Source: Octopus sinensis (Eukaryota). Taken from it: a DNA stretch of 64,000 nucleotides. The notes under the pieces are model-generated. The model worked only from the letters and a program-made list of their open reading frames with translations. It did no database searches and was not told the DNA's origin. The stretch spans positions 82,770,001-82,834,000 of the forward strand of contig NC_043004.1 of assembly GCF_006345805.1 (NCBI RefSeq), given 5' to 3'. Shown piece after piece: positions 11,091 to 63,686 of this stretch; the first letter of the stretch is position 1, and each line of letters begins with the position of its first letter. Made by a program: the position numbers and the translations under genes.

Positions 11091-12041
11091 ATGCAAGTGA
11101 AAGAAACTCAGATGTTTAAACTGCTGGAATTATATCAGAAATTTGATCACTTTAGCCAATCGAGTATGACTGTTTCATCATTGAAATCACCAAAATCTAA
11201 AACAGTTTATTTGCAAGCATTTTATATTCTGTTCTGTACGTATGTGATTATAAACCCTATTCGTCACATTGTTACTTTAGCACAATGTAAAAAAAGGAAT
11301 ACTGATCAACTGTTTGTGTACAGTTACATATTCATTTTCAGAGTTTGTATTTATATCTTTACTTTGTTGAAAATCTTCAACCTATCTAAATTTAAGCTAC
11401 TGACTGAAGAATTTGCCGAAATCAAACTTGAAAATGAAGGTAGAAAATGCCGCAAGTTAATTCTTTTATATTCATTTACGGTATTTTATGCATTTATATG
11501 CGTAACGATCTCTTCTAACATATTAATAGATTTCGTGTTGCCATGCCTTAGTAAAGACTTGTTGGAATATTTTACATATCCGATATCAAACAATATCTTC
11601 AAAGTTTCCTTTTTAACAATACAAGCTACATTTAATTGCATTTCCGCTGTCTATTTGATAGCTGATCTATACGTAGACTTGTTAATCGGATTTACACTCA
11701 GTTATGAGTTCAACAAGTTGGCAAACGAGGCTGAACGATTCGTAACGGAGAAGCAATCCGACCATTCAAATTTCATCAAGAAGCACAAAGATATCACAGA
11801 AATATGTGACGCTCATAATATTATGAGTAGGAAATTGAAATTTGTAAATGAATCTTTACAACTAACGTCAGGATTTATCGTACTTTCTTCCATTCTTAGC
11901 AGTTGCGTTGCAACTTACGTAATAATAAATGACTCACCAAGTATTAAAATCAGCCAACACCTATATTTAGCAATGGTGATGATAGGGTGCTTCATATATT
12001 TGATACTGTTGTTCTGGTGTGGAGTTCATTTGAATAAATCA
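11091..12041 (+). CDS. GRL A1 exon 1 (317 codons, TM1-TM6)
   Basis: ATG at 11091; GT donor at 12042 after AAT AAA TCA. Same length and donor position as the B1 first exon. Confidence 0.88.
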
Positions 12042-15000
12042 GTGAGTATCTTTTACGATAACTTCATAATATCAAATCTTAATTTTATCTTTTTATGTTT
12101 CATCTCTTTCTTCTTTCAGTGTGAAGGCTGTAGTCATGCTCGAGCACCGACTTTGGTATAGCTGCACTATCGCTGATCCATTTTCTTTCATCGGTACTTG
12201 TTGAATGATGGAATCCAAATTTAGTACCCTCGGTTTTCTTACTTTCCGCAAATTAGGATCGTCTTAAGTTTTAATTGGTAGATGGTCGGTTTATATTATG
12301 TCTTGTCTTGTCTTTAGACAGCATTCATCCGGGGTGGGTTGAGCTGACTTCATTCATCCTCAATGCTGCAGCTTGCACAAACGCCGAGCAGACCTGGTGA
12401 TTTGAGGCTAACGACCGCTTGATCTCCAACCACTCCTTATTCCATCAGCGAACGTCGAAGATATGGGGGCCTAGGTCGGGTTCCAGATCAGCCTTGACTG
12501 ACAGAAGCCAGGTTTTTCGCTGTCCACCACACCGTTTTGCCAACCCTGAAGGGGAGCTGGGGCAATTGCTTCGTAGATAAATTCTCCAAGCACTTGTAGA
12601 TGAATTCTATCAAGCACTAGTGCGAACGATTCTCCTTTACGGCAGCGAGACATGGCCGATGAGGGTGTAAGATATTAAGCGACTAGAATCCTTCGATAAC
12701 CTCTGTCTACGCCGCATCCGTCGTGTCCGATGGTATCACTTTATATTATAACACGATCTACATTCATTCATGTGTATCTATTACGAATTTCCGTAGGATA
12801 TTTAATCACAAAGCTATTGTGGTATCTAGCTTTCGATCTTATGTTGGCCTCTATACAGTGGTGATCCGTTCAGGTATTAAAATAACTTTTAGTACCAACG
12901 CTTCAGAATCTATCAGAAATATAGAATCGCATAATTTTCTCTTTGCTCTATGGAGCAAAGTCGTAGAAATGTTGACGTAGAAATGAGGCAATATGCTTCG
13001 TGTACCAGTGTTCGATTTCTTCAATGACATCAATATAGACAGCAAATTTGCCCGTTTGATAGGGACCAATTATTTAGGCAGTTGGAATAGTAGAGATACT
13101 GGCGGACTAAATAAATGGCAGGTGGCATTCGTTTTAGTGATTTACACATTGAGTCTTAATCCCAAAGGGAGAACCATACACACACATAACTTACACGCAC
13201 ACACATATATATATATATATATTTACACACACAGCCATCCATATATATATATATATATATATATATATATACAAAATGTTCTACACTATACACATAATTA
13301 TAATCAGGGCTCCGCTAATTGCTCCGCACGTATCGAATTAGAAATGGACGCTAAGGTCTTTTCAGTTACCATATATATCTCCGAGACAGTAACACACATT
13401 TTTGTAAGCAAAAAAAAAAAAAAAAAAATGATGAATTTACACGACTTCGATTAACCACAGACGTGTTTCGAATTTAAAGTAAATTATAGTTACCTACTTT
13501 TCTCCTCATTGTGATAATTCGAGGGATATATTTGCGAGTGTTAGGATTAGATATGTACGCGATCAAGCGTCATCGCATAACTGATATTCAACCGCACTCA
13601 CAAAAATATACAGCCGAATGTGAATACATTTTTATCCATTATACCCACGTGTGTGTTACGAACACTCCCGCAGAAAACTGTAGATTCGATCAGGGAGTAA
13701 AAAGTGTGTTTCTTTCTCGGAGATAATTATGGTAGTTGTAAAGATAAGTGCGTCCATTTCTAATTCGGGACGTGGCAAAGCAATAAGCTGACCCCTAATT
13801 GTAATTACATATACAATTATGAAATATTTTGTGTAATTCACATAAAAAGGTAATTTTAACGTACTGACTACTTGGTAAAATTATTAATTATTAATCAATT
13901 AATTGATTATTTTATTTATTTTACCCAGTATTATAGATATATATATCTGAGATCTTGTGCTGGAATGAAAGCAGTTGCAGTGTGGAAGGAGTTTAGAAGC
14001 CATTTAAGAACCACAAAAACCATTAGATTTATTTCAACATTTAAATTTCATTTGCCAGTATATTTTCGTCGCTTGGAGCCCGCAACGAATATAAATTTGG
14101 GAAAATAAATTTAAATGTTGAGGTGAATCTAAGTTATATATATATACAAATGCGTCGTGGAAGGTGTTTATAAGATATTTAAGAAAGACAGAAAACCATT
14201 AGATTCACTTCAACATTTAAATTACCTCTGTTTTTACGTTCTGCGTTCTGGTACCAACGAGGTCAACTTTGCTATTAATTCTTACGAGGTCTATAACATA
14301 AGTACCAGACGAGCACTGGGGTCGATGTAAACAACTTACAAACACCACCGGAATTGCCGGCCTTGTGACAAACTATGAAATCATTATTATTATTATTATT
14401 ATTATTATTATTATTATTATTATTATTATTATTATTATTATTATTATTATTAATATCAATATTATTATTATTGAGTGAGAGAGTTGTACATGCCATCAAA
14501 GTGACACTGGGGTAAAATATACGAAGCCCAGTATACCCATCATTACTACCCGCCTGATAAGGGCACACGAGGCACATGCATCACAACCATATGTGCGCGA
14601 CATGGTGATCTCATATAAAAATAAACAGCACATGACCTTACAGGTGGGACCCAGTTAGAATTTTATTCAGGTCGAGTTACCTATCCCGCTCAAAATGTCC
14701 CTGAATACGGGTTGTTTAATGATGTTTCCAGTGGTGAATTATTCAAACCCTAAAGAATTCCTTTCAACATACGGCTATGATACTCCCCCACTACTTCTTC
14801 TCGTGATCAGAGATGCACATATCGTCAGCCTCTAAGGACCATGCTCAACTGGTTAAGGTCTAACAACTGACAAGCAAATCTGTGGTATTGAGCAGAATAT
14901 TTGCTGCAGTCCAACTTTTGTACCAAGAAAAAACAATGTACATGATCACACTTCCAATCAGTTAAGATCAGAAACCATGAGAACCACTGTCTGGTACTGC

Positions 15001-61790: not shown

Positions 61791-63629
61791 GTAAATATTA
61801 CAGTATTTAGTGCATATTTTACATATTTTGTCATACAAAGTCGCAGGCATGATCCTGAGTTCTGCTTCTCGACTGTATAACTTAGGCTTCAGACTCACTG
61901 CGTGACACCTAGTGCAAAATTTTCGACTCTAGCCTCAGGTCGACCAAAGGACTCAATGAGTAATTTCGATAGACAGAAACTGAAAGGAATCATTTGCATA
62001 TATATATATTATGTACGAGATGTTTTGATCTGATTTACGCTGTTCACCCCAAACAGACATTTTATCCACTCAAATCGTAGCCACAAAATAATAGCACATT
62101 TTCTGGAAAGCGGATTGTTATGATGGCAAATATGTTCAAACCTATTATAATTATTAAAATTACCAAGTAAACCGCTACGCAACTGATATAATTGCTACAG
62201 TGTCATAGTAGGTATATATATATATATATATATATATATATATATATATATATAAGAAATTAATATGGAAAATACACACTCTTTACATAGTTTTAATATA
62301 ATTTTTAATATATCAACAGTTCGCTTTCGCTATTCATGATATTGTGGTTTACTTATTTGTATATGTATTTTCTTAAGACGAAATGTTGCCCACGTTGTGT
62401 GTAATGATATTTACGAGTGAATGACTTCACAAGTAGAAAAAATAAGGGGAGGTATTTAGTTATCATTATTATTGTTATTTTTGTGGGTAAGGGAGATAAC
62501 TGTTCGGCTTTCGGTAAGGGTAGGGGTACAGACAAAAAAAAACGGGTTTCGAAATATTTGTTTAGTGAGGTGATTTATGTACAGTGATGTAATTGTGAAT
62601 TGAAATATTTAAAAAGATAAACGTTGGTTATACGTGTATATTAAGACATGTTCTGTATTTTTCAATGAAAAAAGTTTGTTTATTTAAACGTTCTTTTGGA
62701 GAGATTGTGTCTTTGCACTTGTAGAAGGGGAAGAATTTGAAATTTGGCTTGGTGTTATCTGCATATTTTTGTATATGTTCAATCCGGGAAACGGATTTGC
62801 TCTTTATGTAGAGTGGATATTTTTCTCAGGGTCATACTCGTCTATCCAAACGCCAGAGGACTTAACCTTAAGACCCATTGTAGCTGGGCCAGCTTCTGAA
62901 AGCCACCGCTTACGCAATTTTCAAGACATCCCACTGAAACCCTTGCTGTAATACATCAACATTTTCATTAGCTATTTTAAGTTCAAAATGTATTTGGTTT
63001 ATTAGTGACTCATGAAAGATCGTGAATACAACTTCAAACACAGCGATAAATAAGAAATAAAACGCGAATAATAAAAATAAAAAGAGTATATAATACAATT
63101 AAAGAATTGAATTTCAAATAAATAGAAACGAAAATATTGCGAAGGAGAATTTATTTGTTATATGCTTTGTTACTTTTGGGGGCCGAGATATAGCTTCTTA
63201 AAATAATCCTTTGCAATGAAATGCGTTTTATAACCTCTGATTTTATAAAACGTTTGCAATATACCCCTACAACCGTTTATCTTTTGAGTTCAAACGTTAC
63301 CAGTCTTGACATTCTGTCGGTCATAATGCACCCAGCAAAATCTGCCTGCTTAACATTTCGATTCGACGTTCAGTCGCACACCTAACTCAACCATAAAACA
63401 TAATTGAATAACTGATAATTTATGGGCGCCTTAATGAAAATCGGTAACGAATATATCAGAAGATCTTGAAATCATGACCTAAATGTTTAGTGCCCAAAAT
63501 TGCGGTTGCTTAACTGAAACAACCAGCTTACTTTTCTAGTATAAGTAGTACATAACGACCTTCAATCCGTATAATTCTCTTCATTCACTGAAAATAGCAC
63601 ATATATAACGTCTCTTTTCTGTTTTTCAG

Positions 63630-63686
63630 ATGATTGGAAGTTTCATTACTTACATACTTCTGGTTATTCAGACAAAGCAATTATAA
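63630..63686 (+). CDS. GRL cassette copy 3, exon 4 ([18 protein letters not shown])
   Basis: ttcAG acceptor; motif intact; 3 nt differ from copy 1. Confidence 0.68.
   Translation: MIGSFITYILLVIQTKQL

Follow-up and report, generated by a model that had tools for sequence, protein, structure and literature searches.

The window analysed here, a stretch of 64,000 nucleotides (nt) from the genome of Octopus sinensis, very probably contains the 3' part of a gustatory-receptor-like (GRL) gene cluster of the 7tm_7, or seven-transmembrane (7TM) ion channel, family, in which variable first exons share a constant cassette of three short exons. As far as sequence comparison can tell, this layout matches that of the Drosophila genes Gr39a and Gr28b and is a known design; what appears to be new is its presence in an octopus.

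The principal locus was LOC118764608. Positions 1–28359 of the window were 100% identical to positions 31231–59589 of this locus, which places the window at CM016866.1:82,770,001–82,834,000. The coding sequence (CDS) of LOC118764608 ended at window position 18359, which is the stop codon of the first cassette (cassette I). Coordinates outside the window are given under working labels, that is, L003 for LOC118764608, L004 for LOC118764607, L002 for LOC118764606 and L005 for O. bimaculoides LOC106880719; P0056, P0053 and P0008 denote models X1, X2 and X3 of LOC118764608. Five intact first exons (V1, V3, V4, V5 and A1) were identified before cassette I by tblastn, with no other cassette between them; the method was able to find cassette exon 3 even when the 45%-identical cassette of LOC118764606 was used as the query (E = 5e-8). 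V1, V3, V4 and V5 lay upstream of the window, while A1, which begins at L003 42321 on the forward strand, lay inside it and was the last first exon before the cassette, 3,401 nt 5' of cassette exon 2. All five ended in L-N-x-S followed by a phase-0 donor, GT(A/G)AGT, and the introns implied between them and cassette I were about 44.3, 35.7, 29.3, 18.2 and 3.4 kb long, in the order given. The NCBI Gnomon annotation of O. sinensis (LOC118764606, LOC118764607 and LOC118764608) and O. bimaculoides (LOC106880719) already includes isoforms X1–X4, with different first exons and one cassette, under the label 'uncharacterized protein'; in the models of LOC118764608, V3, V4 and V5 are joined to cassette I, lying 18–36 kb away (Table 1). 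The original prediction, made from the window alone, had proposed a GR-like gene with alternative long first exons on one TM7 cassette and had suggested that further first exons might lie upstream. Both suggestions were borne out, the latter by V1, V3, V4 and V5, and the former by models X1–X3, the array of five exons, the related loci and the family assignment described below.

The same layout was observed elsewhere. LOC118764607 (87 kb) had eight first exons on one strand, of which seven were intact and one was interrupted (L004 72453), followed at the end by its only cassette, together with two reversed fragments. LOC118764606, a distant paralogue, had two first exons and one cassette; the three O. 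sinensis loci together contained at least 14 intact first exons. A search of a related genome, as the original prediction had advised, recovered several first exons before one cassette in O. bimaculoides too: LOC106880719, the orthologue of LOC118764607, had five first exons before its cassette, four intact and one interrupted (L005 32030), where the sequence includes 23.6 kb of N and the number of intact exons is to be read as at least four. Altogether there were 17 open first exons of about 312–331 codons. First exons were about 936–993 nt in length, each long copy had its own ATG, and nearly all of them, across loci, had a phase-0 donor after L(N/H)xx. Judged by these loci, the combination of variable first exons with a single cassette appears to be a trait of the family.

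Two peculiarities of the related loci were recorded. The second first exon of LOC118764606 ended in ...LHQN and was followed by GCAAGT, so that its donor begins with GC instead of GT (L002 24276–24283); the related protein P0015 was spliced at exactly this point (LHQN/GCAAGT). In O. bimaculoides there was a complete second cassette (L005 50273–52847), inverted relative to the forward cassette and 3.3 kb 5' of it; the sequenced parts of L005 showed no first exons on the strand of this inverted copy.

The spliced proteins are identified as members of the GR/GRL family by a Pfam match and by a predicted fold. B1 joined to cassette II matched the Pfam 7tm_7 profile (PF08395) at positions 28–367 of 370 (E = 1.3e-8), with 35.0 bits against a gathering cut-off of 26.6 bits, and precomputed matches to PF08395 exist for the sister proteins P0004, P0055, P0057 and P0014. 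A1 joined to cassette I had no Pfam 7tm_7 match of its own; the two full spliced proteins were 47% identical. A family profile produced no meaningful match to the sequences of PDB chains, such that a fold search was required. An AlphaFold2 (AF2) model of A1 with cassette I (predicted local distance difference test, pLDDT, 85.1; predicted template modelling score, pTM, 0.83) was compared with the PDB using Foldseek, and ranks 1–24 were all insect GR, odorant receptor (OR) or Orco chains (Gr64a, Gr43a, BmGr9, Orco, MhOR5, AaegOR10, AgamOR28 and ApisOR5-Orco), with TM-scores of about 0.50–0.68 and E-values down to 1e-7. After rank 24 came G protein-coupled receptors (GPCRs) and ClyA with TM-scores of 0.25 or less, the GPCRs at about 0.1. 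The model had the seven helices, the long S4–S6 and the split S7a/S7b of the GR/OR subunit fold. Insect GR and GR-like proteins conserve the motif TYhhhhhQF in TM7; cassette exon 4 encoded TYxxxxxQ, with the spacing of Q fitting the motif and the final F replaced by T. A tetrameric ligand-gated cation channel, with its N-terminus inside the cell, would be predicted by analogy with the family.

A word-index search with exon A1 alone as the query found no homologue. An exhaustive profile search, with a profile of the two spliced proteins against 1.84 billion representatives, returned 41 relatives, and a later profile search was built from 15 sequences. A few of the 41 were octopus proteins from NCBI, while many were read-through open reading frames (ORFs) of single first exons on short Logan contigs, all continuing through the same donor position (with '...VS...' tails). 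The Logan contigs (P0001–P0013, e.g., L001 from SRR11869390) carried more first-exon read-through ORFs that were 40–68% identical to the present exons, and therefore further variable exons are to be expected in O. sinensis or other cephalopods.

Within the window, four copies of a first exon were identified through tblastn and blastn with A1 and B1: A1 and B1 themselves, B2 and A3. In all four the donor stood immediately after ...LNKS, as GTGAGT in A and GTAAGT in B. The window is AT-rich eukaryotic DNA (29–39% G-C), and had only eight ORFs of at least 150 amino acids (aa) in its 64 kb across six frames. Three of these corresponded to A1, B1 and the latter portion of B2, while two others ran through cassette exon 3; with so few ORFs in such DNA, the pattern of A1, B1 and cassette is far beyond chance. 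As read-through ORFs, A1 occupied 11091–12161 and B1 28141–29106. A and B had been described as exons of exactly 951 nt, ending LNKS in phase 0, with proteins under half identical. The identity was measured at 35.5% for the first exon, and the description of length and frame held for A1 and B1, which were both open, but not for B2, with its 8-nt deletion, or for A3, with its 225 nt. The order B2 ... A3 ... cassette in the third unit, with donors at 48663 and 56177, was present as originally reported.

The terminal exon of the cassette was read directly in the sequence (tttttcag/ATGATTGGA...TAA). For exons 2 and 3, all pairs bounded by AG...GT in 12042–18302 that kept the frame open and totalled 159 nt were considered, and this exhaustive search had one solution, 15443–15511 plus 16419–16508. 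When cassette I was projected onto the two later copies, each of the three proved to be 69+90+57 = 216 nt, open, and with its AG/GT sites intact. Cassettes I and II, which follow A1 and B1, differed at 5 of 216 nt, the figure given originally; cassettes I and III also differed at 5 nt, and II and III at 8 nt. Degenerate extra cassettes were sought across the window, with matches beyond the three at chance level only. In the AF2 model, exon A1 provided the N-terminus and S1 to most of S6, stopping within S6 (residues 287–326), while the cassette, of 71 codons, provided the end of S6, S7a (335–350) and S7b (365–384).

Cassette exon 2 also had an internal, in-frame, acceptor-like site 42 nt from its start (ATGCAGTTTCAG/G). 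This was retained in all three copies, at 15484/15485 (TTTCAG/G) in cassette I, 35803–35804 in II and 60768–60769 in III. An equivalent site is used by isoforms X2 and X4 of LOC118764607 and by X2 of O. bimaculoides LOC106880719, which therefore lose 14 residues (VHSIT..MQFQ). Upstream of cassette exon 3, an intronic block at 15981–16251 was 95–100% identical among the three units, which exceeds the identity of the exons. It was dropped as a candidate functional element, not being conserved in LOC118764607 or O. bimaculoides.

The variable and constant parts had evolved at different rates. The cassettes of LOC118764607 and LOC118764608 differed at a proportion of 0.34 of synonymous sites (pS) and 0.043 of non-synonymous sites (pN), while the most similar pair of variable exons between these loci (V4 versus S7c) had a synonymous distance (dS) of 0.45 and a non-synonymous distance (dN) of 0.23. 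Non-synonymous change was therefore about fivefold slower in the cassette at a similar synonymous distance. The divergence at silent sites rules out recent conversion between the two loci, and the conservation of the cassette protein between them is attributed to selection.

In solved insect GR and OR structures, the ligand pocket is formed by the N-terminus and S1 to most of S6. The mechanism proposed for the octopus loci would begin with transcription at one variable exon, each having its own start site. The donor of the chosen exon would be the only 5' splice site available to the first acceptor of the cassette, and any variable exons lying between would be removed as intron. One gene could thereby produce several receptors that differ in their sensing module but have the module for pore and assembly in common. 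We infer that the choice is made by alternative promoters, that A1 and B1 are used, and that the products function as chemosensory channels; they would presumably be ligand-gated, with differing ligand pockets and a common pore. A comparison of the 500 nt 5' of 15 ATGs found no promoter motif across the array, and likeness within subfamilies only (V3, V4, S7c–f), over about 40–80 nt spanning the ATG and reaching about 60 nt before it.

Several observations weigh against this interpretation. A1 and B1 were in no protein model of the searched databases, and the same was true of V1 and cassettes II and III among the models that the searches returned. The XP_ models of NCBI are computational predictions, two of which (X2 and X3) are short at the N-terminus (141 aa). 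Between O. sinensis and O. bimaculoides, orthologous variable exons had dN/dS of 0.4–1.5, with frames open. By intron divergence and branch counts, constraint on cassette II was statistically inseparable from constraint on cassette I alone. Finally, acceptor-like sequence occurred shortly 5' of some ATGs, which is compatible with a shared 5' exon. The high dN/dS fits fast evolution of the kind common in chemoreceptors, but also weak constraint; at the first exons of L004 and L005 the sensing module may be either under positive selection or only very weakly constrained.

The acceptor-like sequences raise an alternative in which variable exons are chosen not through separate promoters but by mutually exclusive splicing from a shared, non-coding exon upstream. 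Pyrimidine-rich ...AG sequences were present 20–60 nt 5' of several ATGs; B1, for instance, is preceded by cttcttctattctaag, and each of the two first exons of LOC118764606 by ttttgcag. Yet no such exon is known, the available models being CDS only, and variable exons equipped with acceptors would tend to splice to one another. In Gr39a and Gr28b, the protocadherins and UGT1A, moreover, it is the promoter that decides the isoform. This alternative was judged unlikely, though less so than the proposal that the array is a graveyard of exons, where most first exons, A1 and B1 among them, are silent or dying and each cassette in practice has one partner. The latter might explain why A1, B1 and V1 are absent from models, and it accords with the fragment V2, the frameshift in B2, the truncation of A3, the interrupted exons of LOC118764607 and its O. 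bimaculoides orthologue, and between-species dN/dS values of up to 1.3–1.5. It is nevertheless improbable, given that 17 first exons are open and retain the conserved donor position in a genome of 31–38% G-C. These exons differ by 40–65% in protein, and their reading frames have therefore been maintained over a long period; furthermore, comparisons of variable-exon paralogues gave dN/dS of about 0.5, and cassette I has three different first exons as partners in the NCBI models. It was hardly credible that A and B are ordinary, separate genes with cassettes of their own, made alike by gene conversion, which the original prediction had named as the case that would refute it. The 96–98% identity of cassettes I–III is what such conversion would produce, but L003 and L004 have one cassette for every five to eight first exons, and the introns around cassettes I–III are almost as similar as the exons, for which duplication of whole segments suffices. 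Between LOC118764607 and LOC118764608, the contrast of 34% synonymous with 4% non-synonymous differences indicates selection.

The repetition of A, B and the cassette within the window has a cause of its own. Self-alignment and breakpoint mapping showed that a segment of about 20 kb was present three times (units I–III), in the order X, A, cassette, spacer, B and post-B, with one A, one B and one cassette in each repeat unit. The copies had since diverged through deletion and insertion. Exon A was missing from unit II, where B1 was the sole first exon remaining before cassette II, with an intron of 6,670 nt to 35762. In unit III, the filler 5' of A3 comprised 3.2 tandem copies of a 363-bp repeat (54355–55517), with 98% identity, and an inverted partial copy (to 55925). 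This tandem-repeat filler lay between (TA)n runs, as are also found at the other breakpoints of duplication and deletion (e.g., 5882–5903 and 50131–50200). The retrotransposon fragment in unit III represented the 3' part of an element, was specific to that unit and was absent from the matching site in unit I.

Introns in the cassette region differed by 7.3% (I/II), 3.4% (I/III) and 7.2% (II/III), compared with 2.3%, 2.3% and 3.7% respectively for the cassette exons. Exons were therefore modestly more conserved than introns for I/II (Fisher p = 0.003), and not at all for I/III (p = 0.55). Since the introns are nearly as similar, the near-identity of cassettes I–III is due mainly to the recent common descent of whole segments. 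The 5-nt difference between the cassettes after A1 and B1 had originally been taken as a sign of sharing; this must be revised, as it mostly reflects the recent triplication. When private changes were polarised by eye, cassette I had one (synonymous), cassette II four (two non-synonymous) and cassette III four (three non-synonymous, one synonymous). The rate in cassette III was approximately that of introns and near the neutral expectation. Besides the frameshift, B1 and B2 had 26 other coding differences, spread almost evenly across codon positions (9/6/11), as expected under relaxed constraint. Unit III, without an intact first exon, looks dead. The A3 remnant began 6 nt before an in-frame ATG (55958), three codons 5' of the conserved Met that starts the 141-aa NCBI models X2 and X3, and A3 with cassette III would encode a similar product of 144 aa (S6–S7); the resemblance is probably a coincidence, or an effect of how the models' ORFs were chosen.

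The segment from X to B was then triplicated in tandem, giving rise to unit II (B1 with cassette II, A having been deleted) and unit III (a frameshifted B2, a truncated A3 and a drifting cassette). These units are an example of birth-and-death evolution. Their being an artefact of assembly, through haplotigs or a mis-expanded repeat, is very unlikely. Nothing specific suggests it beyond the assembly being a long-read draft, while the units differ by 3–10%, which is more than would be expected between allelic copies, and are further distinguished by kilobase-scale deletions, tandem-repeat filler and a retrotransposon insertion.

The history of exon B was less clear-cut. It had been proposed that the ancestral unit was B-A-cassette, but the sole unit with B and A before one cassette is unit III, where both exons are broken, and in unit I B lies 3' of the cassette. 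Homology between unit I and the other units began abruptly at 5912 (equivalent to 30959 and 50256), beside a (TA)n run, and neither window positions 1–5911, which precede X in unit I, nor the further 2.7 kb up to V5 had any B or post-B sequence. On the simplest reading, the duplicated segment ran from X into the first intron of B, in which case B, lying 3' of cassette I, may have been placed before cassettes II and III by the duplication. There is a substantial chance, only a little short of even, that B was never the partner of A. The ancestral order would then be X-A-cassette-spacer-B, with B the first exon of the next gene and its own cassette beyond the window; with the breakpoint in B's first intron, the order B ... 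A ... cassette would be a by-product, and B1 with cassette II a new chimera. The abrupt start of homology, the lack of B before X and the presence of exactly one A, B and cassette per unit all favour this; however, the same pattern would result had a B copy (B0) ahead of X been deleted from unit I. In either event, the matter concerns only the past of B, and not the variable/constant architecture. The positions of all features are collected in Table 1.

Table 1. Exons, repeat segments and insertions of the O. sinensis GRL cluster; positions refer to the window unless L003 is stated.
Feature	Position	Strand	Remarks
V1	L003 1457-2413	+	Intact first exon; no NCBI model
V2	L003 6109-6486	+	First-exon fragment
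V3	L003 10001-10954	+	V3 with cassette I equals model X1 residue for residue
V4	L003 16398-17354	+	X2 is an exact C-terminal suffix of V4 with cassette I
V5	L003 27576-28511	+	X3 is an exact C-terminal suffix of V5 with cassette I
Segment X, copy I	5912-10493		Left end of triplicated segment (self-alignment)
Variable first exon A1	11091-12041	+	317 codons, ATG to LNKS; phase-0 donor GTGAGT; variable exon closest to cassette I
Cassette I exon 2	15443-15511	+	23 codons; exact match to NCBI model P0056
Cassette I exon 3	16419-16508	+	30 codons; helix S7a and loop; 92.9% nt identity to LOC118764607 exon 3
Cassette I exon 4	18303-18359	+	18 residues and stop; pore-lining helix S7b; CDS 3' end of LOC118764608
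Variable first exon B1	28141-29091	+	317 codons, ends LNKS; phase-0 donor GTAAGT
Segment X, copy II	30959-34548		3' of B1
Unit II filler	34549-35380		Replaces unit I equivalent 10259-15167, i.e., exon A in full plus 3.1 kb of its intron
Cassette II exon 2	35762-35830	+	Projected from cassette I
Cassette II exon 3	36745-36834	+	Projected from cassette I
Cassette II exon 4	38936-38992	+	Includes stop codon; projected from cassette I
Pseudo-exon B2	47720-48662	+	96.4% nt identity to B1; 8-nt deletion after 48141 causes frameshift (B1/B2 alignment); donor GTAAGT kept
Segment X, copy III	50256-54342		3' of B2
Unit III filler	54343-55951		Replaces unit I equivalent 10494-11816, i.e., region 5' of A and its first 726 nt
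A3, 5'-truncated exon A remnant	55952-56176	+	Codons 245-317 only (last 225 nt); 95% nt identity to A1; donor GTGAGT kept
Retrotransposon fragment	58590-59740	-	In intron from A3 to cassette III; zf-RVT ORF 58672-59709, 345 aa
Cassette III exon 2	60727-60795	+	Projected from cassette I
Cassette III exon 3	61701-61790	+	P to L change
Cassette III exon 4	63630-63686	+	V to L and P to Q changes

The closest parallel is with Drosophila Gr39a (as well as Gr28b and Gr23a), where long N-terminal exons are arranged in tandem and each is spliced to shared, short C-terminal exons. Both systems belong to the 7tm_7 superfamily and are divided in the same way, with TM7 in the constant part. N-terminal exons of Gr39a are reported to have been duplicated, lost and pseudogenised individually between species (Robertson 2009, PMC3011837), and birth-and-death of this kind was evident in the octopus array also. 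The octopus genes differ in being GRLs of a cephalopod mollusc rather than insect GRs, and are known here from sequence and gene models. Their arrays are larger and wider, with five to eight exons over 40–90 kb and introns of up to about 44 kb, and a whole segment of variable exon and cassette has been triplicated. Alternative first exons with shared C-terminal exons have been reported repeatedly from GR loci of beetles and other insects (PMC6720082, PMC11302349); the layout is alike, and those reports concern insects only. A search of the available literature turned up nothing on GR-like genes in octopus or other cephalopods, on the NCBI models named above or on alternative first exons of molluscan GRLs.

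The clustered protocadherins and UGT1A of vertebrates are comparable in having tandem variable first exons, which encode the recognition part, before one set of constant exons, and in combining a fast-evolving variable part with a slow constant part. Their proteins are unrelated to the octopus GRLs, however. In protocadherins and UGT1A the promoter is known to be chosen by way of a conserved element, whereas upstream likeness in the octopus was confined to subfamilies.

GR-like channels outside arthropods are poorly understood, and cephalopod chemosensation is discussed mainly in terms of chemotactile receptors derived from nicotinic receptors. These results indicate that the design of some insect taste genes, many sensing exons with one pore cassette, occurs in an octopus also, over far longer distances. 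The constant part (the end of S6, S7a and S7b), with its roughly fivefold lower dN at equal dS, marks which part of a 7TM channel must stay constant. The window catches the birth and death of exons and cassettes in progress, one unit now being a simple four-exon gene while another decays. It also exposes a gap in annotation, since A1, B1, V1 and two cassettes were absent among the protein models that the searches found, and gene counts would understate the GRL repertoire of the octopus, where the intact first exons of just three 'genes' number at least 14. A broader interpretation is possible, if tentative: that octopus GRL genes are protocadherin-like clusters, with these sensing exons at three loci chosen by promoter in each sensory cell, joined to one shared pore cassette by splicing across introns that reach about 44 kb, and arising independently of insect Gr39a and Gr28b. 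Were this true, cephalopods would possess a combinatorial repertoire of 7TM-ion-channel chemoreceptors beside the known sucker chemotactile receptors, and segmental duplication of blocks of variable exon and cassette would be the route by which new genes bud off.

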